Positions 9,010-53,600 of a stretch of 64,000 bases of DNA are shown piece by piece. Source of the DNA: Auanema rhodensis. Taxonomy: Eukaryota; Animalia; Nematoda. Positions within the stretch are counted from its first letter, which is position 1; each line of letters begins with the position of its first letter. Where the stretch lies: assembly GCA_964057225.1 (NCBI GenBank), contig OZ059895.1, positions 5,022,001 to 5,086,000 on the forward strand, given 5' to 3'. The translations under genes were made by a program, and so were the position numbers. Below the pieces are notes generated by a model. It saw only the letters and a list, made by a program, of their open reading frames with translations. It had not been told where the DNA came from and searched no databases.

Positions 9010-9371
9010 AATAAACCATTTGTTCAATTTCAAGTTCGTTCTTCACATATTTATTTTTGCTTAAACATTTAAACTCAAATAGATATTAATTTTAATTTGC
9101 TTTTTGAGAAATATATACTAACTAATTTCAGAATCAATTCCAATTAGAACAACAGCAACAACTACAACAGCAGAGTCAACTTATGACTCAAATTCAGCAG
9201 CAACAACTCCGCAATTCATTCCAAGCCCAATCAAATGGCTTTACAGTTATGCGGTGCACAGATTTGTCACCCTGGTGTTCTGCATGGATTAGTAGTAGTC
9301 CAAACATATGCGCTGTATCTTCCATATATATGAGAAGAGACTGTGCTCGATCTTGCCGGTATTGTCAATAA
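3814..9371 (+). CDS. Secreted M14A zinc carboxypeptidase (prodomain and catalytic domain) with Thr/Ser-rich mucin-like linker, Gln-rich region and C-terminal ShKT domain; multi-exon
   Basis: ATG 3814 opens a signal peptide (MRVRWRFPILILIISSYFTSA). Spliced exons give DGGIHAREW (HxxE), NPDGYEYS, LWRKNR, GVDLNRNF, LHTYSQ, YPSSGGSDDW and LELR. Large exon 5940-8479 matches the 866-aa ORF. Last exon CTDLSPWCSAWISSSPNICAVSSIYMRRDCARSCRYC is a six-Cys ShKT pattern; stop 9369-9371. Confidence 0.92.
8968..9009 (+). repeat. (CAA)14 coding microsatellite (polyGln) in carboxypeptidase exon 8909-9033
   Basis: 14 consecutive CAA read directly, in frame. Confidence 0.95.
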
Positions 9372-9992
9372 TCGTTTTGTTATCTCTAATCAATTATAAC
9401 CAAGAATAGCTTGATTTATAGAGATTCATTGAAAACCATGAACAGTTCTCACAATGTTGACACAAACTTGTTATTATATTTCACATTAGATACAAAATAT
9501 TCTGCTCAAAATCATAGCATGACATCATTTAAATTAATTAATTAACTTCTTACAACTCGTTCCTTTTTCCGAAATGTTGCTTTGGTTTGAATAGTGTCGA
9601 TAGTTTTCTAACCTTTTCGTTAAGTCTAGTTTCTCTTTCACGGCCAAATTTGAGACTCATTCTTACTTTTGCAAGCCGCTGAACATCTTGCTTTATAATT
9701 TCATTTTTTTATGACAATCGTTATTTACTTAATAATAAAAAATTATTTCTCAAAAAATACTCCGGTCCAATACATACATACAATTTCAATGACGTAAATA
9801 TTACTTGGTGTTCGAAATAAGTATTTATTGAAATGTAAAATTACAACGCAGTTAAAGTTAAAGGTTAAATTATAAGAAATATTTCGTATATTAAGTAAAA
9901 AAATGAAACAAAAAAAGCAGTAAGGAATGCATATATATTGGGTCTTGCTACACTTAGTGTAAACTTTTTTTCATGTAAGTAGTGATTTTGAT

Positions 9993-14568: not shown

Positions 14569-14843
14569 CTCAAATACATATAAGTCAAATAATTTTGTAA
14601 AAAAAAAACATTATTTCACGAAAAATAATAAAGCTGCTTTCTCTCGAACGAGTGATACAACTCACGCTTGTAAATGACATGCATCAATTACTGAAATGGG
14701 TATCTGCAAATAGTACCCCTCATTAATAGAATATTTAGTTTTAAAATAAAATATGAATGAACACAGAAGGAAAAATGTAAGCTAAACTTCTGTTTATTTT
14801 TCGAATATATAATATATATACATGTGTATACATTGGAATAATT

Positions 14844-17380
<2,537 letters not shown>

Positions 17381-26968: not shown

Positions 26969-27848
26969 AATTGGATTTTTCTAAAATATCACAAATATTA
27001 AGTAAGCTAGTTTGATTTGTTTCATCAAATACTTAATTATATTTCAAATAATAAAAGTTTGAAACTAAAACAAAAAATATTTGAAAAGAGGAAATATACC
27101 TAAAATATCTTTTTAAAATTATAAAATTTCCCTTCTAATGTTTCACGTGAAATTATCATGAATATGCTAATTAGTTAAGGACTATTCTAATTGTCACGCA
27201 TTATATTTATTGAATGTATTATAGTATTATAATATTATTATTTCATTATATTTTATATAAAATATTATTTTTTTTCATTATTTGTTTCAAATATATCATT
27301 TGAATTATTTTATACTATGTGAAAAATAGATTTTTAATATTTTTAATTATAAATAAATATATATAATAATTATTATTATTCTATTTATGCGTATAATACA
27401 AGATTTTCTATTTAATATTCAACAAATAGATGTGAAGGTTAAGGGATCTTGTCCTCATCCATAACCTGGCTTCTACTTCTTCCGAATTGTTTACAGGTAC
27501 ATTCATCCTCTCATTGCGTCATCCAGCCGTCCCCAGGTCGCACGAAGACGACGATAATGCTTCAGTAATGATGATAACATACACAAAATGAAGAGGTATG
27601 ACCGAGAAGAAAAGTAAAGTTATAGTATATGTACAAAGATGGGCGTGGCAGTATCTTAATACCTCTATCTCATCAGAGATAGTTATTTCAGTCACTGCTG
27701 CTGCACATAAGCAGCTTCTACCGATGGAAGAAGACGAATCTTCTATTTCTCTCTTTCTTAGCCATTTCTTCATTTGCGCATTTCTTGTTTTTCCTATTAA
27801 AACATTTATTTCAGATATCTCAAACTGTTTTGTTCAATAATTTCGAAA

Positions 27849-30461
27849 ATGGCTCCAGTTCTATCATCCATTATCAGTACACCAACCAGCCGTCATCGTA
27901 ATAAAGGTGAAACTTTTTTAAAATTCTTTAAACAAAATTTAATTTGATCAAATGAATAATATTTTTTATTAAATATGCTCATATGCATAAAGAATATAAG
28001 TGCCAGATATACATATGTGTGTGAGAAGTGAAGTAACACGGAGGATCTTACTTCAAACATAGTCATGATATTTCACAAAAATCGTCATCAATAAGTTTCT
28101 TACTCAGTAATCTTTGAATATTTCAAAATGTGCATTGATTTTTCAATTTAAAATGAAACTTCAAATTACTTTTGAATAGCAAACAACATAAGTTGTAATC
28201 TATACGTTGTGACCTTAACATTGTCGGTGGTTAACCAAGAGCAAAACTCATATTCCAACTTGACCTAACCCCGCATCTGCCAAAGTTACGCAATTCTTCT
28301 TCTTTGTGTACGTCTGAGGATAAATATAAGAAGTAGACATACTGGCTTAGACATATAAAAATTTTGAAAATACGTGGGTATAGTATAGTTATAGCAAACT
28401 ATTGCGGCGGTTCTTTTTCAATGTAATATTTTTGGCATTAAATAGTATTATTGTAACTATATGATATAGCTAATAATCATAAAATTAGAATATAAAATGA
28501 ACAGATCTATCAGGTGGTCAGCATACCTCATCTACACGTGTCATTCACATTGTAAAAAAAATATTTTTTTTGTCGGAAATTGTTCAATTACTATAATCAT
28601 AATAGCCATGATGTTATCTCTTAAGGTTCCAAATTCTTCAACTGGATGTATATCTATATAATAAAATATTTTATTATATTTAACAACAATTTCTATTTCA
28701 GCAGCTCCATATATGCCTTCCTATATGGGAGATGGACAAGCTTGTGCCGTTTGTGGTGATTTAGCAACTGGATTACATTATAGAGCTATAACTTGCGAAG
28801 GGTGCAAAGGATTTTTCCGTCGCACAGCACAAGTAATTGATGTTTTCTTATTTATAATGAAGAATTAAATTATTCAACTAATAATGAATCTAATAATGAA
28901 AACTAATACGGATGTTTTTCAGCGTGGTTTACAATATACATGCAAAGCTGATGAAAAGTGTGATATCAATAAACAGACACGTAACGTTTGTCAGCGGTGT
29001 AGATATTTGAAATGTATTGCTGAAGGAATGAGCACAGATCGTGAGTGAACAATAATTTTATTATTCTGTAATAATATAATTTGTTTTAGTTGTTCTAAAT
29101 GATAATGAGCGGGTTCAAAAACGTGAACTAATTAGAGAAAACCGTCAGCGTCGTCAATTGGAATCAACTATTCAAGCCATGAAGAAATTCGACTTGGATA
29201 TTTTTGAATCTGACTGCATTCGTAGTGAGGTGAGAATGTCAAATAATTTACATTTTTAAAAAATTGTGTGCGTAAGTACCGTAGAATGTAATTGAACGAC
29301 AGATTACGGTATTTACTCAGATGTCCTATTTGCTATGATGAGCAGAACTGACCGTCTGCTGATCATTATTTTAGGAAGGACACAAGTCTTATGAATGACG
29401 TCAGAGACGTAATTACGTCATACTGCTTTCAATTTATTTCTTTTGCCGAATATGTTTCACCAGTAGTAGTCATGAGTTGAATTGCATCACCAGCTACTGA
29501 TGGCGTCATAATCTATTCATCCTAGAAAAAATAAAATTTGTCTGTTGTACATTTATTCAGTTAATAGTAAAATATATTACAATTTGCTTTATATTTCTAA
29601 AAATAATGTTTTAGATGAATCGTATTACTAAGCTTTACTGTCAATTGTTTGATAAGCCTCTTTGTCGTGATTTGATGATGTCTCCTGCTACAGTAATTAC
29701 AAGCGACGAGCACATCGATGCTTTAATTCGTCCAGTTTTACGTCGTGCCACCACATATGCCAATGGCTTATCTGTCTTCAAAAAAGTATGTTTCAATTTT
29801 AATATGATGAAATATATTTATCAAATTAATAGATTGAGTGTCAAACACAGAAAACAATAATTTCCGAAAGTTTTCTTGAAGTACAGCTGTTACGCCTAAT
29901 TTCCTTCTATGATGAAACAGAAAATTGCTTCCGTCCTTCAGAATCATTATTTTTGCGTAAGCATGACCTGATTGATAGTTTAGAAGTTGATATTGTGGAT
30001 ACGGATGACAGTGGTATTTAATATTTTCTTTCGACAAAAAAATATATTTCATAAATTTTAGAAGAATTATCTAATTTGATTTCAATTCTTTTCGCAGTAG
30101 CTCGCTCATTGTCTGCTTGTCAACTTGATCATAGACAGTTGGCAGTATTGACAGCACTATTTATCTACAATCCAGATAACTTGATGTCATCAGACAGTGT
30201 ATGTTATGCTAAACAACTAAATATAATAATCTTGTTTTGTTCCATTTTCAGACTGAATTCGAAGAGATTTCAGAATGCCGTGATCGCTTGTTAGACATGT
30301 TTCGTATCTTGGCAGATGAAACATCTGACTCGCCATGCGATTTACATCGCTGGCCACGTTTATTAGCTCGAGTCACACAGTTCCGCATTCTTTGTGCTCG
30401 ACTGAAACGCCATTTAACTCCTAAAAATTTTCAGCTATTTAACACTATTTTAGCTATTTAA
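27849..30461 (+). CDS. Nuclear hormone receptor, thyroid hormone receptor (NR1A)-like; ~8 exons
   Basis: DBD: [42 protein letters not shown]|[39 protein letters not shown]|[25 protein letters not shown]: [64 protein letters not shown]. Nuclear receptor call is firm; TR subfamily rests on recalled alignment. Confidence 0.9.
28449..28628 (+). repeat. Copy 1 of a 180-bp inverted duplication (intron 1 of the nuclear receptor)
   Basis: Reverse complement of 31047-31226; no mismatch found by eye. Confidence 0.93.
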
Positions 30462-31046: not shown

Positions 31047-31226
31047 AACCTTAAGAGATAACATCATGGCTATTATGATTATAGTAATTGAACAATTTCC
31101 GACAAAAAAAATATTTTTTTTACAATGTGAATGACACGTGTAGATGAGGTATGCTGACCACCTGATAGATCTGTTCATTTTATATTCTAATTTTATGATT
31201 ATTAGCTATATCATATAGTTACAATA
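31047..31226 (-). repeat. Copy 2 of the 180-bp inverted duplication (downstream of the nuclear receptor)
   Basis: Reverse complement of 28449-28628. Confidence 0.93.
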
Positions 31227-32419: not shown

Positions 32420-33573
32420 ATGTTAAAACTATTTTGGGATGGATTAGCTAGTCCTAAAGTTGCTATCAGTCTGTCAGTTTCCGCTGTTTTATCTGCAGCA
32501 GCTTTTTTTCCTTTGATTGTTGTGCAAACCATGTTTTCGTTTTCCAACATTGAACATAAAGACTGCATGGTAACGTTTATAAAAACAATCCAACTGTTAT
32601 TATATTAATTATTTATTTATCAAATAAAGAAAAATAATATGTTATTCAGATCCTCTTAGGAAATCTTGGCAGACAAGCTCGTGAAATAACATCTGGTTAT
32701 GATATTTCATTGCGTTCAAAAAGACAAATGGCTTGTAAGTTTCTAATTTTAAATTATCTCCAATTTTCTGTTTCACACTCTTAGTTACTTTTTAGCATGT
32801 TGTATTGGACCACCAGGGTTGACAGGATATCCAGGCAAACCATCTCCTGATGGTATGGATGGCTATCCAGGTAATTGCTCTATTTTTGATTATGCTATTT
32901 AACAATTAATACGTAATATAGGAAAGCCGGGACAGCCAGGAATTCCTGCCGATCAAGATCCAAGGTCATTGTGTGAACGGGAATGCCCGATAGGTCCACC
33001 TGGGTAACACTTAAAAGAGCTTGCCCTTTACATTAGAGTGTTATAGAAATTCGGGTGAAGACGGACCTAAAGGAGATTCTGGGAGACGGGGGCGACCGGG
33101 CCTTTCTGGCATACCAGCTGAACCCTCACCTCAGGGACCGCCAGGAGAAGTGGGGGAGCCTGGATTTGACGGTTTGCCGGGAAGACCAGGGGACAGGGGA
33201 GAGCCGGGAAAGTTGTATACAGCTGATGGGCCCCCGGGCAAAGAAGGAGAAATAGGACCTCCAGGACCTCCAGGACCTAAAGGAAAACGTGGTAGAGAAG
33301 GTCTAGATGGTAGATACCTAGTTTATACATGGCTTTGAGTTTTATATGTTTAAGGTGAGCTAGGTTTGCCGGGTGAACGTGGTGACGAAGGGTTAAAAGG
33401 AACTCGTGGACAACGAGGACGACAAGGACCACCCGGACCTCCAGGTATTCATAATTTGATAATATAAATATAATATTAATACATGTTTACACTTAGGACT
33501 ACCTGGTCCAAAATGGCCATGTGAGAACTGTCCACAGCCAAGAGTTTCTCCAGGATATTTTCAAAGCAAATAA
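32420..33573 (+). CDS. Nematode cuticle collagen; multi-exon
   Basis: Hydrophobic N-terminus, furin site RSKR, Cys cluster, Gly-X-Y runs ([19 protein letters not shown]-type) and C-terminal [14 protein letters not shown]. Confidence 0.92.
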
Positions 33574-34822: not shown

Positions 34823-35875
34823 ATGGTTCAAGTTGCCGTTTATATGGCTACTATAGCTTCAGCGTTTTCTATTTTCGTGTGCTTAGCGGGATGGATTGTA
34901 ATTTCAAACGATATAAATGAAATGTATGATGATGTTATGCTGAATATAAATCAATTTAAGGTAGTTAACATAAATAATTTCACTTGTAACATCTATACTT
35001 CTATAGTATGTCTCTGAAGATGCTTGGAGTCATATTTTACAATTTCATGGAACTCATTCTGAAAGAGACGCATTCATTAATCTTCTTGGAAGGCGCAAAC
35101 GTGATTCTACGGTTTGCAGTAAGTTTTATGACATTTATATATTGTACTTTATTTGTTTAAGGTTGTGGACTTCCTAGTCAGGGCTGTCCTGCTGGACCAC
35201 CAGGTCCGCCAGGACAAGCTGGAGAACCTGGAAGTATTGGTCCTGACGGTAACAATGGACCTCCAGGACCACCAGGACTAGCCATATTCGATTCTCCACC
35301 TATTTCTCGTGGGTGTATTGTATGTCCTGCAGGTCCTCCAGGAGAAGTGGGTGCTATTGGACATGAAGGGCCGATAGGAAGGGATGGACAACCAGGAAAA
35401 CGCGGACCACCTGGAAAAGATGGCCTCCAGGGTGAGAGGGGTGAACCTGGAGCACCAGGTGAACCAGGACGTCCAGGACAAGTAGTTTTAAATTGTAAAT
35501 TATTGACTTATAATTTTTGATTAGGATGGAATACTAGGATCCAAAGGAAAAGAATGCTTAACTGGAAAAGGTCTTCCCGGAAATCCTGGTAGACCTGGCA
35601 TACCAGGAGAACTTGGCCCTGATGGCAAAAACGGAAACCATGGAGAACCTGGAGAAGAAGGACGACCTGGTCCCACTGGATCACCCGGATTAGATGGAAT
35701 TTCAGGAACACCAGGAGAGTTTGGAGTTGTAAGTTTTAGCATTCTATTCTTTCTTGTAACCTTAACATATTTGAAGCCCGGACAACCTGGCAAACCAGGA
35801 GAAGACGGAGAATATTGCACATGCCCAGAGAGAAGTCGTCGACGCAGAAAACTTCGTCGTATTTTTATTCATTAA
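34823..35875 (+). CDS. Nematode cuticle collagen; multi-exon
   Basis: Col_cuticle_N-type start [21 protein letters not shown]...[20 protein letters not shown] site, [20 protein letters not shown] and [19 protein letters not shown] at ~34669. Confidence 0.93.
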
Positions 35876-38603: not shown

Positions 38604-41600
38604 TTAGTTAGTAGTTTCTTGGCGGACTTCGATCTTCTCAACAGTCATGTCAGGATTCATTTTAGTTGCATCTTGAATGGCTTGACTGAGCTCCTGAAAT
38701 ACCAACATTAACTGTCTAATTACAATTATTTAAAACATACCGCATCGTAATCTATGGCAGCATCGGAGTGAATAGTAACTCGATGTTCCACGTGAGTTTC
38801 AATTATACCATCCTTTTCCGTTTTGTAAGTGATGGTTTCGATAGTTCGATTTCCGCAAGTAACAGTTTTAGATGAGACAAATTCCCCAAGAGGCTAAAAT
38901 AGATAATAAATCTCAACATTAAATGAAATTATTTACATCATTTTGGTCTCTATCTGCATTATCTTCGTAAGTAAGTGTTCTAGTATGTGTCTCCACAACA
39001 GGACCTTCCTTTGGTGTTCCTAATGGTGTTGTCTGCTCACGAATACGTTCAACAGAAACATTTTCCTAAACAAATGAATTATGTCGGTTCAAATGAAGGT
39101 TTCAAGTAAACACTTACTGGTAGACTATCATCAGGAACGACATAGTTTTGGAAAGTTTGTTTTTGAACGGTATGCTTGACTTGAGAAGTTTTGACAGTTC
39201 GACTAAAGAATATAAATTAATGTTACAGAGTGATACTAAAAAAGACAAACGTGATTTTATTTCCATGTTCATCATATTCAACTGTGACGTCATCTGGTAA
39301 TATATTAGTCTCTTGCCAACTTGAAACAGTGAGATGGCGTTGCCCGCTCTCCTAAAAGTCGTATGGTTAGATATTTCCATGAATGTAAGCGATTGGGCAG
39401 TACTAAACCAAGAAGTATCAAAGTGACTTATAGCAAGCATCGGATAGCTTCCAAGAATCTTATGCTTTTATTAGCGTTAAAAATGTGTAATAGATTCATT
39501 GCCCCTACTATAACTAGTGGGCTCTTCTCTTCACGATATTAAGCTATAATCCTAACTAGACCAGGCAGGATAAACACAGTAAATGAGCATTGGATTCAAA
39601 CACAAGAAGGCAAAATAACTAAATATACACGAAGCTCGCATAAACTAAGACTGGGCTAACAATAGCAGCAGATCTAATGATCTAATCCGTTTTAGGCTCT
39701 AGTATGGGTCAGGACATTTGATGTTAGATAAATAAACATTCTTTGCGATTTAAAAGCCATCAAAGATATGCATTCAGAATTGCGATGAGCTAATGCGAAC
39801 AGAACTAATCAGATCTAAGTCCAAGTGCAGCTTCCAAGCAGAAATATCGAATGATCGGAAAGTCGGCAGCATAGTGGACTGGATGGCGCTTGAAAACAAA
39901 CAAGGATCTTGGTAAGTACTTGGTTATAGCTGCAAACGAAGACGAAGCGACATGTTGTAGCAAGTGACATCAGCGGTTGAGCCTACTACTATTGGGTACC
40001 TCGAAGGAGACCGGAAAAGGTGCCATAGCGCGCACAGTAAAGGTGCGCTCGGCCTGTTCAACTCGTGGACTGCTGTGGTTGAGGCGCTCAGCCTCGGCCA
40101 AAGTAGTTGCAAGTGACTAAATAACGACAAATCTACTCAAAATTGGTCTCTTAAGATATTATCATGAATACAAAATATAGTTTCTATGTTGTAGTGTCTG
40201 CTCAGCGGTTTGTTGGGTAGTGATGAAACCGCTATCTGCACACAACGCACGCAAAAAGATAAATAACAGTGAAAACAAAGTGGAAAGATAGAATGAAAAC
40301 CACACCGGATCATTCGGGTTGAAGCCCGACGATGAGCCTTCTCCTTTCAAGTGATATTTGAGCTCATTCGTCTCGCGGCGAACCACTTTGGCATCGGCAA
40401 GATGAGTCGAAGGTAGAATGCCAGGATTTTTGCCCTATATATGAAACCCGCAATAGAAAGTAATGTGTCGACAAAACAGATTCAGAATATTAAAAATAAT
40501 ATCATATTCGCAACATTCCGAAAAAAGAATACCAACATGCTTTCAATAAACAACTTATAAACGTTCTCATGAAGTAGATTAGTTATAATCATGAACAGTT
40601 ATTTGAAAAAAATTAACGTACCTCTGGTTCAGGACAAATGGTAACCATCTTTTGTTCATCTTCACTGGAAGAAGAATCACTTGAATCATTCTCTTTAACT
40701 CCTTTGTCCTTTTTGCCCTTAGTCTGAAAATATAGAATATAATATTAGAATTCCAGTAAATTTAACAGTTAATCATATTCGCTGATGAGTACTAGAATAC
40801 AACATATTGTTGGTATCACATCAATACTTCACGTACGTTTTTTCTGAAGTTCTCTGCTAGATGCAAGAGAGAAAACAAACATAATTCTATAGAACACTCA
40901 AAACTATAAGATAGACTAATTCTTGTCAGCTCGCACCACAATTTTTGCTTCTCGAGAAAAACGTGAAGTATTCATGATAATATTAAACATCAAAAATAGA
41001 ACTTTGTACTCATCAGCGACGCACAGTTTCTACTAAACTTCGCTCATATCATTGTTTTCACAAGCGTGCATATGGACTAAACAAAAACAACAAAGAAGGT
41101 GCTGTAGCTAAAATTTTGCAAAGAAGCGGAAGCTATAAACATGACAATCACAGCTATACAAGGAACTTCGTAGATGCCAGAAGATAAACATCAAATTGTG
41201 CAAGCATCGAAATGATAAACTTCTAAGTAGGCAACTGATCAAAACGATACAAAGTTTTGAAAGGTTAGGATCTTGAACAAATATTATAGTATGAAAGAAC
41301 AAAACATTGAACGTAAGAAACAGAACGATACAACATCCAGGTTAGAGCTACTTTGGAACCCAGGTGAAACTGTGATATTAACAGAAAAGAAGGAGAAAAT
41401 GAACTAATCACCTTAAAGCCCAAGCGGCTTAAAAAAGATCGGCCAGTGGGTGCCATTGGTGGTGGAGTAGCAGTGAATATAAGCCCTCCGTCATCTTCAG
41501 AAACAGCTCCTAACCCCGCCCCTGACAAACAAAAAACGGGCTCAAGTTGGATCTCCACCCTTCTCTCAACTCTGACTTCGATCCATTGTTGACCATCAAT

Positions 41601-44600
41601 TGTAGTACCTTCCGAATGAAAACTGTGATGTGAGACACGATTTCCGCATTCAGCCACAACTTTTTCAGAAGAAACATTTGAAACCTTCAGATCTTCAGAA
41701 CAACCATTTTTATCTCGAAAACATACATCGTTCCGAGCAATATTGATTGATCGAGAAATAGGAAAATTTTCCAAGTCCCGATGTGGCGCAAAATCATCTA
41801 AAGGTCCATCATATTTGTCAGACACTGGATAGGCTGCAAGTTCGTTAGTCTTAACTCCTGGCTTCAAGAATCCGAATCTCTTGCTTGAAGATTCACGAGT
41901 CTTACTGGTAGTCTTTTCAGGAGTAGATTCGGTTTCGTCAGGAACAATACGTGCAATGAGTCTAACTTCAGACTTCTCTTCGGTATCAGCAGAAGTAGAA
42001 GGTCCGGATTTCAGGTGTAAGATGGCCTTTTTCTTGCTGTCGGATGGAGCAGCAGCTGGCTTACTCTTTAGCCAAGACTGACCATGATGGTAGACATTGG
42101 TATGGTCTTTGAGTGGAGTAGAGTCCAAGTCACATTCCCTGTTAGTCTCTTCAAGAGGTCCGTCATAAGATGTTGAAGCAAATCCGTAAGATTCGGGTTG
42201 GACATGCTCTTTTTCGACAACGTCTTCATCACCGTCATGGCGAATTTGGGTAATGAATCGGAAGCGACGTTCCTCTGTTTCAGAGCTTGACACAGGAGAT
42301 TCAACAGTTTTCTTGGGACTATATGCAACTTGTGGAACGTTCTCGAGTGGAAGGTTTTCCAAGTCACGGTGTGGCTCAACATCATCTAAAGGTCCATCAT
42401 ATTTGTCAGACACTGGATAGGCTGCAAGTTCGTTAGTCTTAGTCTTGCGAGCTCCTGGCTTCAAGAATCCGAATCTCTTGCTTGAAGATTCACGAGTCTT
42501 ACTGGTAGTCTTTTCAGGAGTAGATTCGGTTTCGTCAGGAACAATACGTGCAATGAGTCTAACTTCAGACTTCTCTTCGGTATCAGCAGAAGTAGAAGGT
42601 CCGGATTTCAGGTGTAAGATGGCCTTTTTCTTGCTGTCGGATGGAGCAGCAGCTGGCTTACTCTTTAGCCAAGACTGACCATGATGGTAGACATTGGTAT
42701 GGTCTTTGAGTGGAGTAGAGTCCAAGTCACATTCCCTGTTAGTCTCTTCAAGAGGTCCGTCATAAGATGTTGAAGCAAATCCGTAAGATTCGGGTTGGAC
42801 ATGCTCTTTTTCGACAACGTCTTCATCACCGTCATGGCGAATTCGGGTAATGAATCGGAAGCGACGTTCCTCTGTTTCAGAGCTTGACACAGGAGATTCA
42901 ACAGTTTTCTTGGGACTATATGCAACTTGTGGAACGTTCTCGAGTGGAAGGTTTTCCAAGTCACGGTGTGGCTCAACATCATCTAAAGGTCCATCATATT
43001 TGTCAGACACTGGATAGGCTGCAAGTTCGTTAGTCTTAGTCTTGCGAGCTCCTGGCTTCAAGAATCCGAATCTCTTACTCGAAGATTCACGAGTCTTACT
43101 GGTAGTCTTTTCAGGAGTAGATTCGGTTTCGTCAGGAACAATACGTGCAATGAGTCTAACTTCAGACTTCTCTTCGGTATCAGCAGAAGTAGAAGGTCCG
43201 GATTTCAGGTGTAAGATGGCCTTTTTCTTGCTGTCGGATGGAGCAGCAGCTGGCTTACTCTTTAGCCAAGACTGACCATGATGGTAGACATTGGTATGGT
43301 CTTTGAGTGGAGTAGAGTCCAAGTCACATTCCCTGTTAGTCTCTTCAAGAGGTCCGTCATAAGATGTTGAAGCAAATCCGTAAGATTCGGGTTGGACATG
43401 CTCTTTTTCGACAACGTCTTCATCACCGTCATGGCGAATTCGGGTAATGAATCGGAAGCGACGTTCCTCTGTTTCAGAGCTTGACACAGGAGATTCAACA
43501 GTTTTCTTGGGACTATATGCAACTTGTGGAACGTTCTCGAGTGGAAGGTTTTCCAAGTCACGGTGTGGCTCAACATCATCTAAAGGTCCATCATATTTGT
43601 CAGACACTGGATAGGCTGCAAGTTCGTTAGTCTTAGTCTTGCGAGCTCCTGGCTTCAAGAATCCGAATCTCTTGCTTGAAGATTCACGAGTCTTACTGGT
43701 AGTCTTTTCAGGAGTAGATTCGGTTTCGTCAGGAACAATACGTGCAATGAGTCTAACTTCAGACTTCTCTTCGGTATCAGCAGAAGTAGAAGGTCCGGAT
43801 TTCAGGTGTAAGATGGCCTTTTTCTTGCTGTCGGATGGAGCAGCAGCTGGCTTACTCTTTAGCCAAGACTGACCATGATGGTAGACATTGGTATGGTCTT
43901 TGAGTGGAGTAGAGTCCAAGTCACATTTCCTGTTAGTCTCTTCAAGAGGTCCGTCATAAGATGTTGAAGCAAATCCGTAAGATTCGGGTTGGACATGCTC
44001 TTTTTCGACAACGTCTTCATCACCGTCATGGCGAATTCGGGTAATGAATCGGAAGCGACGTTCCTCTGTTTCAGAGCTTGACACAGGAGATTCAACAGTT
44101 TTCTTGGGACTATATGCAACTTGTGGAACGTTCTCGAGTGGAAGGTTTTCCAAGTCACGGTGTGGCTCAACATCATCTAAAGGTCCATCATATTTGTCAG
44201 ACACTGGATAGGCTGCAAGTTCGTTAGTCTTAGTCTTGCGAGCTCCTGGCTTCAAGAATCCGAATCTCTTGCTTGAAGATTCACGAGTCTTACTGGTAGT
44301 CTTTTCAGGAGTAGATTCGGTTTCATCAGGAACAATACGTGCAATGAGTCTAACTTCAGACTTCTCTTCGGTGTCAGCAGAAGTAGAAGGTCCGGATTTC
44401 AGGTGTAAGATGGCCTTTTTCTTGCTGTCGGATGGAGCAGCAGCTGGCTTACTCTTTAGCCAAGACTGACCATGATGGTAGACATTGGTATGGTCTTTGA
44501 GTGGAGTAGAGTCCAAGTCACATTCCCTGTTAGTCTCTTCAAGAGGTCCGTCATAAGATGTTGAAGCAAATCCGTAAGATTCGGGTTGGACATGCTCTTT

Positions 44601-47600
44601 TTCGACAACGTCTTCATCACCGTCATGGCGAATTCGGGTAATGAATCGGAAGCGACGTTCCTCTGTTTCAGAGCTTGACACAGGAGATTCAACAGTTTTC
44701 TTGGGACTATATGCAACTTGTGGAACGTTCTCGAGTGGAAGGTTTTCCAAGTCACGGTGTGGCTCAACATCATCTAAAGGTCCATCATATTTGTCAGACA
44801 CTGGATAGGCTGCAAGTTCGTTAGTCTTAGTCTTGCGAACTCCTGGCTTCAAGAATCCGAATCTCTTGCTTGAAGATTCACGAGTCTTACTGGTAGTCTT
44901 TTCAGGAGTAGATTCGGTTTCGTCAGGAACAATACGTGCAATGAGTCTAACTTCAGACTTCTCTTCGGTATCAGCAGAAGTAGAAGGTCCGGATTTCAGG
45001 TGTAAGATGGCCTTTTTCTTGCTGTCGGATGGAGCAGCAGCTGGCTTACTCTTTAGCCAAGACTGACCATGATGGTAGACATTGGTATGGTCTTTGAGTG
45101 GAGTAGAGTCCAAGTCACATTCCCTGTTAGTCTCTTCAAGAGGTCCGTCATAAGATGTTGAAGCAAATCCGTAAGATTCGGGTTGGACATGCTCTTTTTC
45201 GACAACGTCTTCATCACCGTCATGGCGAATTCGGGTAATGAATCGGAAGCGACGTTCCTCTGTTTCAGAGCTTGACACAGGAGATTCAACAGTTTTCTTG
45301 GGACTATATGCAACTTGTGGAACGTTCTCGAGTGGAAGGTTTTCCAAGTCACGGTGTGGCTCAACATCATCTAAAGGTCCATCATATTTGTCAGACACTG
45401 GATAGGCTGCAAGTTCGTTAGTCTTAGTCTTGCGAGCTCCTGGCTTCAAGAATCCGAATCTCTTGCTTGAAGATTCACGAGTCTTACTGGTAGTCTTTTC
45501 AGGAGTAGATTCGGTTTCGTCAGGAACAATACGTGCAATGAGTCTAACTTCAGACTTCTCTTCGGTATCAGCAGAAGTAGAAGGTCCGGATTTCAGGTGT
45601 AAGATGGCCTTTTTCTTGCTGTCGGATGGAGCAGCAGCTGGCTTACTCTTTAGCCAAGACTGACCATGATGGTAGACATTGGTATGGTCTTTGAGTGGAG
45701 TAGAGTCCAAGTCACATTCCCTGTTAGTCTCTTCAAGAGGTCCGTCATAAGATGTTGAAGCAAATCCGTAAGATTCGGGTTGGACATGCTCTTTTTCGAC
45801 AACGTCTTCATCACCGTCATGGCGAATTCGGGTAATGAATCGGAAGCGACGTTCCTCTGTTTCAGAGCTTGACACAGGAGATTCAACAGTTTTCTTGGGA
45901 CTATATGCAACTTGTGGAACGTTCTCGAGTGGAAGGTTCTCCAAGTCACGGTGTGGCTCAACATCATCTAAAGGTCCATCATATTTGTCAGACACTGGAT
46001 AGGCTGCAAGTTCGTTAGTCTTAGTCTTGCGAACTCCTGGCTTCAAGAATCCGAATCTCTTGCTTGAAGATTCACGAGTCTTACTGGTAGTCTTTTCAGG
46101 AGTAGATTCGGTTTCGTCAGGAACAATACGTGCAATGAGTCTAACTTCAGACTTCTCTTCGGTATCAGCAGAAGTAGAAGGTCCGGATTTCAGGTGTAAG
46201 ATGGCCTTTTTCTTGCTGTCGGATGGAGCAGCAGCTGGCTTACTCTTTAGCCAAGACTGACCATGATGGTAGACATTGGTATGGTCTTTGAGTGGAGTAG
46301 AGTCCAAGTCACATTCCCTGTTAGTCTCTTCAAGAGGTCCGTCATAAGATGTTGAAGCAAATCCGTAAGATTCGGGTTGGACATGCTCTTTTTCGACAAC
46401 GTCTTCATCACCGTCATGGCGAATTCGGGTAATGAATCGGAAGCGACGTTCCTCTGTTTCAGAGCTTGACACAGGAGATTCAACAGTTTTCTTGGGACTA
46501 TATGCAACTTGTGGAACGTTCTCGAGTGGAAGGTTTTCCAAGTCACGGTGTGGCTCAACATCATCTAAAGGTCCATCGTATTTGTCAGACACTGGATAGG
46601 CTGCAAGTTCGTTAGTCTTAGTCTTGCGAACTCCTGGCTTCAAGAATCCGAATCTCTTGCTTGAAGATTCACGAGTCTTACTGGTAGTCTTTTCAGGAGT
46701 AGATTCGGTTTCGTCAGGAACAATACGTGCAATGAGTCTAACTTCAGACTTCTCTTCGGTGTCAGCAGAAGTAGAAGGTCCGGATTTCAGGTGTAAGATG
46801 GCCTTTTTCTTGCTGTCGGATGGAGCAGCAGCTGGCTTACTCTTTAGCCAAGACTGACCATGATGGTAGACATTGGTATGGTCTTTGAGTGGAGTAGAGT
46901 CCAAGTCACATTCCCTGTTAGTCTCTTCAAGAGGTCCGTCATAAGATGTTGAAGCAAATCCGTAAGATTCGGGTTGGACATGCTCTTTTTCGACAACGTC
47001 TTCATCACCGTCATGGCGAATTCGGGTAATGAATCGGAAGCGACGTTCCTCTGTTTCAGAGCTTGACACAGGAGATTCAACAGTTTTCTTGGGACTATAT
47101 GCAACTTGTGGAACGTTCTCGAGTGGAAGGTTCTCCAAGTCACGGTGTGGCTCAACATCATCTAAAGGTCCATCATATTTGTCAGACACTGGATAGGCTG
47201 CAAGTTCGTTAGTCTTAGTCTTGCGAACTCCTGGCTTCAAGAATCCGAATCTCTTGCTTGAAGATTCACGAGTCTTACTGGTAGTCTTTTCAGGAGTAGA
47301 TTCGGTTTCGTCAGGAACAATACGTGCAATGAGTCTAACTTCAGACTTCTCTTCGGTATCAGCAGAAGTAGAAGGTCCGGATTTCAGGTGTAAGATGGCC
47401 TTTTTCTTGCTGTCGGATGGAGCAGCAGCTGGCTTACTCTTTAGCCAAGACTGACCATGATGGTAGACATTGGTATGGTCTTTGAGTGGAGTAGAGTCCA
47501 AGTCACATTCCCTGTTAGTCTCTTCAAGAGGTCCGTCATAAGATGTTGAAGCAAATCCGTAAGATTCGGGTTGGACATGCTCTTTTTCGACAACGTCTTC

Positions 47601-50600
47601 ATCACCGTCATGGCGAATTCGGGTAATGAATCGGAAGCGACGTTCCTCTGTTTCAGAGCTTGACACAGGAGATTCAACAGTTTTCTTGGGACTATATGCA
47701 ACTTGTGGAACGTTCTCGAGTGGAAGGTTTTCCAAGTCACGGTGTGGCTCAACATCATCTAAAGGTCCATCGTATTTGTCAGACACTGGATAGGCTGCAA
47801 GTTCGTTAGTCTTAGTCTTGCGAACTCCTGGCTTCAAGAATCCGAATCTCTTGCTTGAAGATTCACGAGTCTTACTGGTAGTCTTTTCAGGAGTAGATTC
47901 GGTTTCGTCAGGAACAATACGTGCAATGAGTCTAACTTCAGACTTCTCTTCGGTGTCAGCAGAAGTAGAAGGTCCGGATTTCAGGTGTAAGATGGCCTTT
48001 TTCTTGCTGTCGGATGGAGCAGCAGCTGGCTTACTCTTTAGCCAAGACTGACCATGATGGTAGACATTGGTATGGTCTTTGAGTGGAGTAGAGTCCAAGT
48101 CACATTCCCTGTTAGTCTCTTCAAGAGGTCCGTCATAAGATGTTGAAGCAAATCCGTAAGATTCGGGTTGGACATGCTCTTTTTCGACAACGTCTTCATC
48201 ACCGTCATGGCGAATTCGGGTAATGAATCGGAAGCGACGTTCCTCTGTTTCAGAGCTTGACACAGGAGATTCAACAGTTTTCTTGGGACTATATGCAACT
48301 TGTGGAACGTTCTCGAGTGGAAGGTTTTCCAAGTCACGGTGTGGCTCAACATCATCTAAAGGTCCATCATATTTGTCAGACACTGGATAGGCTGCAAGTT
48401 CGTTAGTCTTAGTCTTGCGAGCTCCTGGCTTCAAGAATCCGAATCTCTTGCTTGAAGATTCACGAGTCTTACTGGTAGTCTTTTCAGGAGTAGATTCGGT
48501 TTCGTCAGGAACAATACGTGCAATGAGTCTAACTTCAGACTTCTCTTCGGTATCAGCAGAAGTAGAAGGTCCGGATTTCAGGTGTAAGATGGCCTTTTTC
48601 TTGCTGTCGGATGGAGCAGCAGCTGGCTTACTCTTTAGCCAAGACTGACCATGATGGTAGACATTGGTATGGTCTTTGAGTGGAGTAGAGTCCAAGTCAC
48701 ATTCCCTGTTAGTCTCTTCAAGAGGTCCGTCATAAGATGTTGAAGCAAATCCGTAAGATTCGGGTTGGACATGCTCTTTTTCGACAACGTCTTCATCACC
48801 GTCATGGCGAATTCGGGTAATGAATCGGAAGCGACGTTCCTCTGTTTCAGAGCTTGACACAGGAGATTCAACAGTTTTCTTGGGACTATATGCAACTTGT
48901 GGAACGTTCTCGAGTGGAAGGTTCTCCAAGTCACGGTGTGGCTCAACATCATCTAAAGGTCCATCATATTTGTCAGACACTGGATAGGCTGCAAGTTCGT
49001 TAGTCTTAGTCTTGCGAACTCCTGGCTTCAAGAATCCGAATCTCTTGCTTGAAGATTCACGAGTCTTACTGGTAGTCTTTTCAGGAGTAGATTCGGTTTC
49101 GTCAGGAACAATACGTGCAATGAGTCTAACTTCAGACTTCTCTTCGGTATCAGCAGAAGTAGAAGGTCCGGATTTCAGGTGTAAGATGGCCTTTTTCTTG
49201 CTGTCGGATGGAGCAGCAGCTGGCTTACTCTTTAGCCAAGACTGACCATGATGGTAGACATTGGTATGGTCTTTGAGTGGAGTAGAGTCCAAGTCACATT
49301 CCCTGTTAGTCTCTTCAAGAGGTCCGTCATAAGATGTTGAAGCAAATCCGTAAGATTCGGGTTGGACATGCTCTTTTTCGACAACGTCTTCATCACCGTC
49401 ATGGCGAATTCGGGTAATGAATCGGAAGCGACGTTCCTCTGTTTCAGAGCTTACCACAGGAGATTCAACAGTTTTCTTGGGACTATATGCAACTTGTGGA
49501 ACGTTCTCGAGTGGAAGGTTTTCCAAGTCACGGTGTGGCTCAACATCATCTAAAGGTCCATCATATTTGTCAGACACTGGATAGGCTGCAAGTTCGTTAG
49601 TCTTAGTCTTGCGAGCTCCTGGCTTCAAGAATCCGAATCTCTTGCTTGAAGATTCACGAGTCTTACTGGTAGTCTTTTCAGGAGTAGATTCGGTTTCGTC
49701 AGGAACAATACGTGCAATGAGTCTAACTTCAGACTTCTCTTCGGTGTCAGCAGAAGTAGAAGGTCCGGATTTCAGGTGTAAGATGGCCTTTTTCTTGCTG
49801 TCGGATGGAGCAGCAGCTGGCTTACTCTTTAGCCAAGACTGACCATGATGGTAGACATTGGTATGGTCTTTGAGTGGAGTAGAGTCCAAGTCACATTCCC
49901 TGTTAGTCTCTTCAAGAGGTCCGTCATAAGATGTTGAAGCAAATCCGTAAGATTCGGGTTGGACATGCTCTTTTTCGACAACGTCTTCATCACCGTCATG
50001 GCGAATTCGGGTAATGAATCGGAAGCGACGTTCCTCTGTTTCAGAGCTTGACACAGGAGATTCAACAGTTTTCTTGGGACTATATGCAACTTGTGGAACG
50101 TTCTCGAGTGGAAGGTTTTCCAAGTCACGGTGTGGCTCAACATCATCTAAAGGTCCATCGTATTTGTCAGACACTGGATAGGCTGCAAGTTCGTTAGTCT
50201 TAGTCTTGCGAACTCCTGGCTTCAAGAATCCGAATCTCTTGCTTGAAGATTCACGAGTCTTACTGGTAGTCTTTTCAGGAGTAGATTCGGTTTCGTCAGG
50301 AACAATACGTGCAATGAGTCTAACTTCAGACTTCTCTTCGGTGTCAGCAGAAGTAGAAGGTCCGGATTTCAGGTGTAAGATGGCCTTTTTCTTGCTGTCG
50401 GATGGAGCAGCAGCTGGCTTACTCTTTAGCCAAGACTGACCATGATGGTAGACATTGGTATGGTCTTTGAGTGGAGTAGAGTCCAAGTCACATTCCCTGT
50501 TAGTCTCTTCAAGAGGTCCGTCATAAGATGTTGAAGCAAATCCGTAAGATTCGGGTTGGACATGCTCTTTTTCGACAACGTCTTCATCACCGTCATGGCG

Positions 50601-53600
50601 AATTCGGGTAATGAATCGGAAGCGACGTTCCTCTGTTTCAGAGCTTGACACAGGAGATTCAACAGTTTTCTTGGGACTATATGCAACTTGTGGAACGTTC
50701 TCGAGTGGAAGGTTTTCCAAGTCACGGTGTGGCTCAACATCATCTAAAGGTCCATCATATTTGTCAGACACTGGATAGGCTGCAAGTTCGTTAGTCTTAG
50801 TCTTGCGAACTCCTGGCTTCAAGAATCCGAATCTCTTGCTTGAAGATTCACGAGTCTTACTGGTAGTCTTTTCAGGAGTAGATTCGGTTTCGTCAGGAAC
50901 AATACGTGCAATGAGTCTAACTTCAGACTTCTCTTCGGTATCAGCAGAAGTAGAAGGTCCGGATTTCAGGTGTAAGATGGCCTTTTTCTTGCTGTCGGAT
51001 GGAGCAGCAGCTGGCTTACTCTTTAGCCAAGACTGACCATGATGGTAGACATTGGTATGGTCTTTGAGTGGAGTAGAGTCCAAGTCACATTCCCTGTTAG
51101 TCTCTTCAAGAGGTCCGTCATAAGATGTTGAAGCAAATCCGTAAGATTCGGGTTGGACATGCTCTTTTTCGACAACGTCTTCATCACCGTCATGGCGAAT
51201 TCGGGTAATGAATCGGAAGCGACGTTCCTCTGTTTCAGAGCTTACCACAGGAGATTCAACAGTTTTCTTGGGACTATATGCAACTTGTGGAACGTTCTCG
51301 AGTGGAAGGTTTTCCAAGTCACGGTGTGGCTCAACATCATCTAAAGGTCCATCATATTTGTCAGACACTGGATAGGCTGCAAGTTCGTTAGTCTTAGTCT
51401 TGCGAGCTCCTGGCTTCAAGAATCCGAATCTCTTGCTTGAAGATTCACGAGTCTTACTGGTAGTCTTTTCAGGAGTAGATTCGGTTTCGTCAGGAACAAT
51501 ACGTGCAATGAGTCTAACTTCAGACTTCTCTTCGGTATCAGCAGAAGTAGAAGGTCCGGATTTCAGGTGTAAGATGGCCTTTTTCTTGCTGTCGGATGGA
51601 GCAGCAGCTGGCTTACTCTTTAGCCAAGACTGACCATGATGGTAGACATTGGTATGGTCTTTGAGTGGAGTAGAGTCCAAGTCACATTCCCTGTTAGTCT
51701 CTTCAAGAGGTCCGTCATAAGATGTTGAAGCAAATCCGTAAGATTCGGGTTGGACATGCTCTTTTTCGACAACGTCTTCATCACCGTCATGGCGAATTCG
51801 GGTAATGAATCGGAAGCGACGTTCCTCTGTTTCAGAGCTTACCACAGGAGATTCAACAGTTTTCTTGGGACTATATGCAACTTGTGGAACGTTCTCGAGT
51901 GGAAGGTTTTCCAAGTCACGGTGTGGCTCAACATCATCTAAAGGTCCATCATATTTGTCAGACACTGGATAGGCTGCAAGTTCGTTAGTCTTAGTCTTGC
52001 GAGCTCCTGGCTTCAAGAATCCGAATCTCTTGCTTGAAGATTCACGAGTCTTACTGGTAGTCTTTTCAGGAGTAGATTCGGTTTCGTCAGGAACAATACG
52101 TGCAATGAGTCTAACTTCAGACTTCTCTTCGGTGTCAGCAGAAGTAGAAGGTCCGGATTTCAGGTGTAAGATGGCCTTTTTCTTGCTGTCGGATGGAGCA
52201 GCAGCTGGCTTACTCTTTAGCCAAGACTGACCATGATGGTAGACATTGGTATGGTCTTTGAGTGGAGTAGAGTCCAAGTCACATTCCCTGTTAGTCTCTT
52301 CAAGAGGTCCGTCATAAGATGTTGAAGCAAATCCGTAAGATTCGGGTTGGACATGCTCTTTTTCGACAACGTCTTCATCACCGTCATGGCGAATTCGGGT
52401 AATGAATCGGAAGCGACGTTCCTCTGTTTCAGAGCTTACCACAGGAGATTCAACAGTTTTCTTGGGACTATATGCAACTTGTGGAACGTTCTCGAGTGGA
52501 AGGTTTTCCAAGTCACGGTGTGGCTCAACATCATCTAAAGGTCCATCATATTTGTCAGACACTGGATAGGCTGCAAGTTCGTTAGTCTTAGTCTTGCGAG
52601 CTCCTGGCTTCAAGAATCCGAATCTCTTGCTTGAAGATTCACGAGTCTTACTGGTAGTCTTTTCAGGAGTAGATTCGGTTTCGTCAGGAACAATACGTGC
52701 AATGAGTCTAACTTCAGACTTCTCTTCGGTGTCAGCAGAAGTAGAAGGTCCGGATTTCAGGTGTAAGATGGCCTTTTTCTTGCTGTCGGATGGAGCAGCA
52801 GCTGGCTTACTCTTTAGCCAAGACTGACCATGATGGTAGACATTGGTATGGTCTTTGAGTGGAGTAGAGTCCAAGTCACATTCCCTGTTAGTCTCTTCAA
52901 GAGGTCCGTCATAAGATGTTGAAGCAAATCCGTAAGATTCGGGTTGGACATGCTCTTTTTCGACAACGTCTTCATCACCGTCATGGCGAATTCGGGTAAT
53001 GAATCGGAAGCGACGTTCCTCTGTTTCAGAGCTTGACACAGGAGATTCAACAGTTTTCTTGGGACTATATGCAACTTGTGGAACGTTCTCGAGTGGAAGG
53101 TTCTCCAAGTCACGGTGTGGCTCAACATCATCTAAAGGTCCATCGTATTTGTCAGACACTGGATAGGCTGCAAGTTCGTTAGTCTTAGTCTTGCGAACTC
53201 CTGGCTTCAAGAATCCGAATCTCTTGCTTGAAGATTCACGAGTCTTACTGGTAGTCTTTTCAGGAGTAGATTCGGTTTCGTCAGGAACAATACGTGCAAT
53301 GAGTCTAACTTCAGACTTCTCTTCGGTATCAGCAGAAGTAGAAGGTCCGGATTTCAGGTGTAAGATGGCCTTTTTCTTGCTGTCGGATGGAGCAGCAGCT
53401 GGCTTACTCTTTAGCCAAGACTGACCATGATGGTAGACATTGGTATGGTCTTTGAGTGGAGTAGAGTCCAAGTCACATTCCCTGTTAGTCTCTTCAAGAG
53501 GTCCGTCATAAGATGTTGAAGCAAATCCGTAAGATTCGGGTTGGACATGCTCTTTTTCGACAACGTCTTCATCACCGTCATGGCGAATTCGGGTAATGAA

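Follow-up and report, generated by a model that had tools for sequence, protein, structure and literature searches.

Has the thyroid hormone receptor (TR) persisted in nematodes and, if so, as what kind of receptor? A 2021 review lists THR as lost in Ecdysozoa (PMC7827873), and a Daphnia TR has been known since 2007. The question is raised by a gene on the forward strand of a 64,000-nt stretch of the Auanema rhodensis genome (assembly GCA_964057225.1, contig OZ059895.1, positions 5,022,001 to 5,086,000; hereafter the window, in whose coordinates all positions are given unless another locus is named), which an earlier note had read as TR (NR1A)-like, with a TR-type DNA-binding domain (DBD) as well as a collinear ligand-binding domain (LBD). 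We conclude that it is very probably the single-copy rhabditine (clade V) orthologue of the bilaterian thyroid hormone receptor gene NR1A. The receptor coding sequence fills exactly the interval that the note had given, 27849-30461 (+), from an ATG at 27849 to a stop codon ending at 30461, in eight in-frame exons that join to 1146 nt (381 codons and the stop). All of the motifs quoted in the note were found again in the window sequence and in the spliced model.

A TR-type DNA-binding domain

Database searches were made with exons one at a time or with orthologue proteins, and the spliced model entered the local comparisons, alignments and trees. The TR signature preceding the DBD, PYMPSYM, and the first zinc finger recognised in the earlier note lie in exon 2 (28702-28832, 131 nt), which continues through the P-box CEGCKG to FFRRTAQ. 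Exon 3 (28923-29040, 118 nt) encodes the second zinc finger as far as GMSTD, and exon 4 (29090-29229, 140 nt) encodes the T/A-box C-terminal extension (CTE) and the hinge. The TR-type T/A box that the note had described straddles the exon 3/4 junction, with GMSTD on the exon 3 side. All nine zinc-finger cysteines are present, and Pfam zf-C4 is matched by exon 2 with an expect value (E) of 1.8e-14 and by exon 3 with E 1.6e-10.

Searched singly against solved structures, each of these exons placed TR at the head of its matches. Exon 2 found TR beta first (53.8 bits), followed by FXR (48.4) and EcR (47.6), and exon 3 found TR first (38.4 bits), followed by RXR (35.4) and RAR (34.7). For exon 4 the best matches were TR beta DBD constructs, which were also the sole nuclear receptors matched, with a weak score (E 0.24 over 25 residues). 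The DBD plus CTE is 60-68% identical to invertebrate TRs. Every nematode and invertebrate TR sequence in the alignment keeps both the PYMPSYM-type motif, which we take from other NR1 sequences to be TR-specific, and the T/A box.

A nematode-wide family whose nearest relatives are TRs

A search of 1.84 billion representative proteins with exon 8 gave one match, an orthologue of 367 aa from Diploscapter pachys. This protein served as query both at full length and as DBD plus CTE, the best 120 matches being considered in each search. Among the matches listed for the full-length protein are about 45 nematode proteins, 340-410 aa long, in which all major clades are represented: strongylids, Pristionchus, Heterorhabditis, ascarids, filariae, oxyurids, Strongyloides, Steinernema, Panagrolaimus, Ditylenchus, Aphelenchoides, Heterodera, Plectus and Trichuris. 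The matches listed after the nematode proteins are TRs only, from echinoderms, hemichordates, annelids, molluscs, brachiopods, tunicates and vertebrates. Their identity is 28-38%, and the alignments cover 72-99% of the query's length (mostly >90%); a few TR rows show the local alignment of the DBD alone. Residues 15-125 of the same protein (motif, DBD and T/A box) recovered the nematode orthologues and TRs, including those of tardigrades, the sole exception among the matches listed being an FXR-like fish protein, misassembled and with its DBD duplicated. This protein, the public 'bile acid receptor-like' model of Cyprinodon variegatus, carries its N-terminus and DBD twice in tandem, which inflates its score in a DBD search; the tandem arrangement is probably an assembly or annotation artefact.

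In direct comparison, the spliced model aligns with bona fide TRs from about residue 16 to 376 at 32-34% identity (local blastp E ~1e-50), and with the Necator, Haemonchus and Diploscapter proteins end-to-end at about 50%. Chance alone falls far short of explaining this resemblance to TR. Its nearest protein is that of Diploscapter pachys (53-54% identity in the tree set, 50-54% across comparisons), and a partial Heterorhabditis LBD is 50% identical to it. In UniRef, the Toxocara canis family member bears the name 'Thyroid hormone receptor beta'. The reciprocal search that the earlier note had proposed leads from the nematode orthologue to TRs and, in the other direction, from the oyster TR to this locus: among all matches of the oyster TR in the whole genome the best is exon 2 of the gene (68% identity, E 1.2e-12). 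When the Necator orthologue was compared with the whole 181-Mb genome, its LBD parts matched this locus only, and other loci matched only its DBD. The gene is therefore single-copy, its LBD exons matching nowhere else. The same genome holds 82 exon-level zf-C4 matches, which can be read as roughly 50 nuclear receptor genes.

Intron positions shared with TR genes

Exon boundaries were mapped in the oyster, Lingula and Acanthaster TR genes and in the Trichuris, Brugia, Strongyloides ratti, Necator and Diploscapter orthologues. Three of the seven introns of the window gene agree with those of bona fide TRs in both alignment column and phase: the one before PYMPSYM and those at the classical junctions JP2 and JP3. 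A phase-1 intron before PY(I/M)PSYM is also found in oyster and Acanthaster TR and in the Trichuris, Necator, Diploscapter and S. ratti genes, and lies one residue off in Lingula TR. The phase-1 intron at JP2, between GMxxD(L) and VLN, is common to all of the nine compared genes that retain an intron there. JP3, in phase 0, occupies an identical column in the oyster, Lingula and Acanthaster TRs and in the Trichuris, Brugia, Necator and Diploscapter orthologues. This junction, in LBD motif I, is group-specific and common to all NR1A genes (Wu et al. 2007, PMC2045677); its group specificity is taken from that paper, and our own comparison covers TRs and nematode orthologues. The hinge intron is in phase 0 in all compared genes and lies in an unalignable stretch.

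The closest agreement was seen in Trichuris, whose orthologue shares five of six intron positions exactly with oyster TR, the sixth (hinge) being equal in phase, as well as identical exons of 116 nt and 142 nt. Since the Trichuris gene matches the oyster TR intron set, it forms a bridge between TR and the derived rhabditid genes. In S. ratti, all introns of the orthologue except two are lost, the phase-1 intron before PYIPSY being retained. An extra phase-2 intron in the first finger, between LHY(R) and AITC, is present in Brugia, Necator and Diploscapter, and the window gene is without it.

Phylogeny and descent

A quick tree of 60 rows recovered nematode systematics, with the window gene in Rhabditina together with Diploscapter and the strongylids. 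A more careful tree of 31 rows was built in IQ-TREE under LG+C20+F+G4 with posterior mean site frequencies (PMSF), using as outgroup the C-terminal copy of the FXR-like fish protein. Deuterostome TRs are basal in this tree, the outgroup attaching among them, and the protostome group consists of lophotrochozoan TRs and Ecdysozoa. Support was 99/96 for tardigrade TRs plus nematodes, 96/92 for nematodes, 99/94 for Plectus plus Rhabditida, 100/100 for Rhabditida and 100/99 for Rhabditina with the window gene. The maximum-likelihood (ML) phylogeny that the earlier note had called for thus sets the gene, with a single partial outgroup, beside tardigrade TRs inside the TR clade and not with another NR1 group. 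The gene tree follows the species tree through other bilaterians, tardigrades, Trichuris, Plectus and Rhabditida, which argues for vertical inheritance. An independent NR1-wide ML tree published by Yamakawa, Barf and Hejnol in 2026 names THR in Plectus sambesii, Trichuris suis, Mesodorylaimus, tardigrades and priapulids (PMC13195034, Fig. S2). Orthology to NR1A, as the note had proposed, is therefore supported by best matches in both directions, by intron positions including JP3 and, provisionally, by tree position.

The ligand-binding domain and hormone pocket

With two C4 zinc fingers followed by an LBD of the helical-sandwich fold, the protein belongs to the nuclear receptor superfamily. 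The LBD, complete and of the 12-helix type, is collinear with that of TR, and the LBD strings cited in the earlier note were recovered in order from exons 5, 6, 7 and 8. Exon 5 (29615-29785, 171 nt) encodes helices 1-3 and ends in GLSVFKK at the phase-0 JP3 intron. Exon 6 (29833-30013, 181 nt) encodes, by alignment, helices 4-6, the beta turn and an acidic insert that is also present in Diploscapter and strongylids; the intron after it is common to clade V orthologues only, among the compared genes. Exon 7 (30062-30198, 137 nt) encodes helices 7-8 and was hit by the Necator orthologue when the genome was searched in six frames, and exon 8 (30252-30461, 210 nt including the stop) encodes helices 9-12 and ends in LFNTILAI followed by the stop, whose position is conserved in the orthologues. 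Taken singly, LBD exons 5 and 8 had no match among solved structures even at E 10, and the LBD exons stayed under the threshold of Pfam Hormone_recep; the orthologues do carry PF00104. The complete LBD of Necator, searched alone against solved structures, reached E<0.01 with TR beta only.

T3 (triiodothyronine)-contact residues define hormone binding, not descent. At the positions which we take, from TR structures, to be T3 contacts (human TR beta numbering), the window protein retains R282 and R316, two of the arginines by which the T3 carboxylate is held, as arginine, and has R320 replaced by F, N331 by S, H435 by L, and M310, M313 and S314 by L, Q and L. The charge clamp of activation function 2 (AF-2) is lost as well: K288 is N, and E457 has no acidic counterpart in helix 12, LFNTILAI-stop, which reads LFTELM in Diploscapter and LFEKIL in strongylids. 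Residue 435 is His or Tyr in Trichuris and many clade IV copies and Leu or Ile in all clade V copies; invertebrate TRs retain H435 and a basic residue at 320. Because the window protein has other residues at R320, at N331, at H435 and at both positions of the AF-2 clamp, it is unlikely to bind T3 in the canonical way.

Alternative origins of the gene

A different origin would be a separate, nematode-specific NR1 lineage, derived for example from a Rev-erb/E75, EcR/LXR or DAF-12-type receptor, whose DBD is TR-like by retention or convergence. Several observations lean this way or otherwise count against descent from NR1A. A profile of 31 nematode LBDs, compared with solved structures, places TR alpha (85 bits) and TR beta (82) first, with Rev-erb beta (81), LXR alpha (80), RAR (75) and EcR (74) next, so that Rev-erb and LXR come within 4-5 bits of TR. 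A confident AlphaFold model of the Necator LBD, with a predicted local distance difference test (pLDDT) score of 89.4, was found by Foldseek to resemble LXR, VDR and TR alike (template modelling score, TM, 0.62-0.70), LXR and VDR ranking level with TR or above it. By itself, then, the LBD is that of an NR1 receptor with TR marginally the best fit. It is here that the earlier note's description of the gene as comparatively conserved needs to be narrowed: it holds for the DBD and T/A box, at about 60-68% identity to TRs, and not for the LBD, for which the profile barely favours TR over Rev-erb and LXR. Two of the four classical junctions are also displaced, JP1 lying 8 codons downstream (after FFRRTAQ) of its TR position (after CEGCK) and JP4, in phase 0, 7 columns downstream of the phase-1 TR junction between LLxxx(D) and R. 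Furthermore, the careful tree has one partial outgroup and a set without RAR, Rev-erb, EcR or DAF-12 sequences, and in an approximately unbiased (AU) test a topology joining nematodes with the outgroup against all other TRs together, which leaves the nematodes outside all other TRs, was not rejected (log-likelihood difference, delta lnL, 5.6, p=0.084). Finally, the splice model itself is a prediction with homology and splice signals as its basis.

We nevertheless consider a separate lineage very unlikely. It does not sit well with the presence of the TR-specific pre-DBD motif and T/A box, with a set of best non-nematode matches that are all TRs, both at full length and for the DBD, among the matches listed, or with a tree that puts nematodes with tardigrade TRs; the published NR1-wide tree, too, names the Plectus and Trichuris genes THR (PMC13195034). 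JP3 is among the shared introns, and the Trichuris gene equals oyster TR exon for exon. The JP1 and JP4 displacement recurs in Necator, Diploscapter and Brugia. In the Trichuris orthologue both junctions stand at the TR positions, and we read the shift as a probable secondary displacement within Rhabditida. That the locus might instead be a decaying or non-functional relic of a TR is suggested by the loss of several T3-contact and AF-2 clamp residues. Against this stand an intact open reading frame (ORF), seven canonical introns, the full set of nine zinc-finger cysteines, 50% end-to-end identity with long-diverged orthologues, retention of the family in all major nematode clades and a conserved stop position, and we judge a relic to be extremely improbable. 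Orthology to NR1A remains the reading that we adopt.

Caenorhabditis and NHR-2

Within NR1A, the gene could further be the orthologue of C. elegans nhr-2, with NHR-2 being a fast-evolving TR descendant, a proposal that is compatible with orthology to NR1A and adds a claim to it. A lead comes from UniRef, where an Anisakis family member bears the name 'Nuclear hormone receptor family member nhr-2', which is an automatic name. A literature search for papers on C. elegans NHR-2 gave no statement on its affinity. Caenorhabditis proteins were absent from the best 120 matches of the Diploscapter orthologue both at full length (all at least 164 bits) and for DBD plus CTE (all at least 139 bits), as well as from the matches listed in the LBD-profile search (at least 23, strongylid-type proteins), although even the distant Trichuris orthologue still scores 172 bits against the Diploscapter query. 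Since no Caenorhabditis protein appears among the best matches, the gene has been lost there or has changed beyond the reach of the searches, and we regard orthology to nhr-2 as unlikely.

Proposed function

The window protein would be expected to bind AGGTCA-type half-sites and to use the T/A helix to extend the contact, given the known roles of the P-box and T/A box, and would probably do so as a monomer, as a homodimer or with another partner. It would then control transcription by means of an LBD that departs from T3-activated TRs in its pocket and in its AF-2 surface. With several T3-contact residues and both clamp residues replaced, the protein is most likely no classical T3 receptor but an orphan or one with a different ligand, possibly with a repressor bias. 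The fuller proposal that rhabditid TR is a ligand-independent or differently liganded, repression-biased and clamp-free receptor, perhaps surviving beyond recognition as Caenorhabditis NHR-2, is put forward tentatively, and we hold it to be rather doubtful.

As regards partners, a degenerate search of the genome for an RXR/USP-type first finger (KHYGVYSCEGCK) returned a COUP-type sequence only. This is weak evidence of absence and agrees, if weakly, with reported losses of usp in Rhabditina (PMC13195034). The Strongyloides gene 'Ss-ecr-1' is 14-fold female-biased in expression (PMC8050236), and Strongyloides 'ecr' genes are misannotated according to Yamakawa et al. 2026 (PMC13195034). Because a true ecr is reported to be absent in Strongyloides, 'Ss-ecr-1' may be a member of the nematode TR family.

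Gene start, introns and neighbouring sequence

Exon 1 (27849-27906, 58 nt) carries the start codon and a short A/B region that ends in RHRNK before a phase-1 intron, and the N-terminus of the protein can be aligned, starting at residues 1-5, with those of the Diploscapter and Necator orthologues. A TTTCAG acceptor-like site at 27809-27814 (+), 35 nt upstream of the ATG, is a candidate spliced-leader (SL) trans-splice acceptor. All seven introns are GT-AG with T-rich, nematode-type TTTCAG-like acceptors, and four of them are only 47-53 nt long.

Exons 2-8, and with them the whole DBD and LBD, are bracketed by a perfect (100%) 180-nt inverted repeat at 28449-28628 and 31047-31226, with one arm in intron 1 and the other 586 nt past the stop codon. 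The repeat has no match in Rfam, and a multicopy element was ruled out, as only two copies exist in the 181-Mb genome. It may have arisen as a local inverted duplication of recent date, or may serve as a substrate for inversion or as a pair forming double-stranded RNA. No inverted repeat was found at the Diploscapter and Trichuris loci; those at the Necator locus are its own and imperfect (74-95%). Palindromic repeats resembling miniature inverted-repeat transposable elements (MITEs) lie at 9201-9536 and 14729-15000 of the Necator americanus locus, in intron 2 of the orthologue and about 2.5 kb downstream of it; they are inverted, 83-95% complementary and unrelated in sequence to the 180-nt repeat of the window.

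Further downstream in the window, a 19-kb ORF at 41265-60326 (-) consists of about 30 near-identical repeats of about 199 aa and is the cause of a flat 45.6% G+C (GC) in the composition profile. Between it and the receptor gene lie Gly-Pro-Pro-rich ORFs of cuticle-collagen type at 33021-33338 (+) and 35521-35820 (-).

Implications

A nematode TR is not new as such: public database records of the family exist, and THR is named in a 2026 supplement (PMC13195034, Fig. S2). For this reason the novelty of the gene is below what the earlier note had assumed. The window locus and its roughly 45 orthologues, which include those of close Caenorhabditis relatives, show that a TR gene has persisted through the whole nematode phylum, and C. 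elegans, the reference nematode, has no recognisable copy. Many of the orthologues belong to human and livestock parasites, making this an unstudied conserved nuclear receptor for parasitology. The family also forms a graded series, from Trichuris (TR introns, His435) through Plectus (canonical first finger) to the rhabditids with their remodelled pocket and AF-2, and with this series the fate of thyroid-type signalling in Ecdysozoa becomes open to testing.

Comparison with known receptors

Rev-erb/E75 (NHR-85) and LXR/EcR resemble the window receptor in LBD profile scores near those of TR and in a predicted fold that fits equally well, and differ from it in the DBD region, where the pre-DBD motif, DBD and T/A box score lower than TR for every DBD exon; neither group is represented among the best 120 full-length or the best 120 DBD matches.

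With vertebrate TR alpha and beta the window protein has in common a collinear DBD, the T/A box, the overall LBD and the equivalents of R282 and R316. The positions R320, N331, H435, M310/M313/S314 and K288/E457 are replaced, a long A/B domain is lacking and, judging from these residues, T3 binding would not be expected.

Invertebrate TRs (oyster, Lingula, sea urchin and sea star, hemichordate, tardigrade) share with the window gene the PY(I/M)PSYM motif immediately before the DBD, the EGCKG of the P-box, the T/A box DLVLN..R..KR.LI..NR..R, a collinear LBD, and the introns before the motif and at JP2 and JP3. In contrast, JP1 and JP4 are displaced in the window gene, its first finger departs from the ATGYHYRCMTC of invertebrate TRs, an acidic insert separates the beta turn from helix 7, H435 and R320 (H and R/K in invertebrate TRs) are lost, and an AF-2 helix with no acidic residue ends the protein.

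The nematode THR genes of Yamakawa et al. 2026 and public records such as that of Toxocara canis belong to one orthologue family with the window gene; the copy of this species is absent from protein collections. Within the family, the gene groups with Diploscapter, strongylids and Pristionchus and lies farther from Plectus and Trichuris, whose copies are much more TR-like, both having the canonical first finger and that of Trichuris also the TR intron set and H435.

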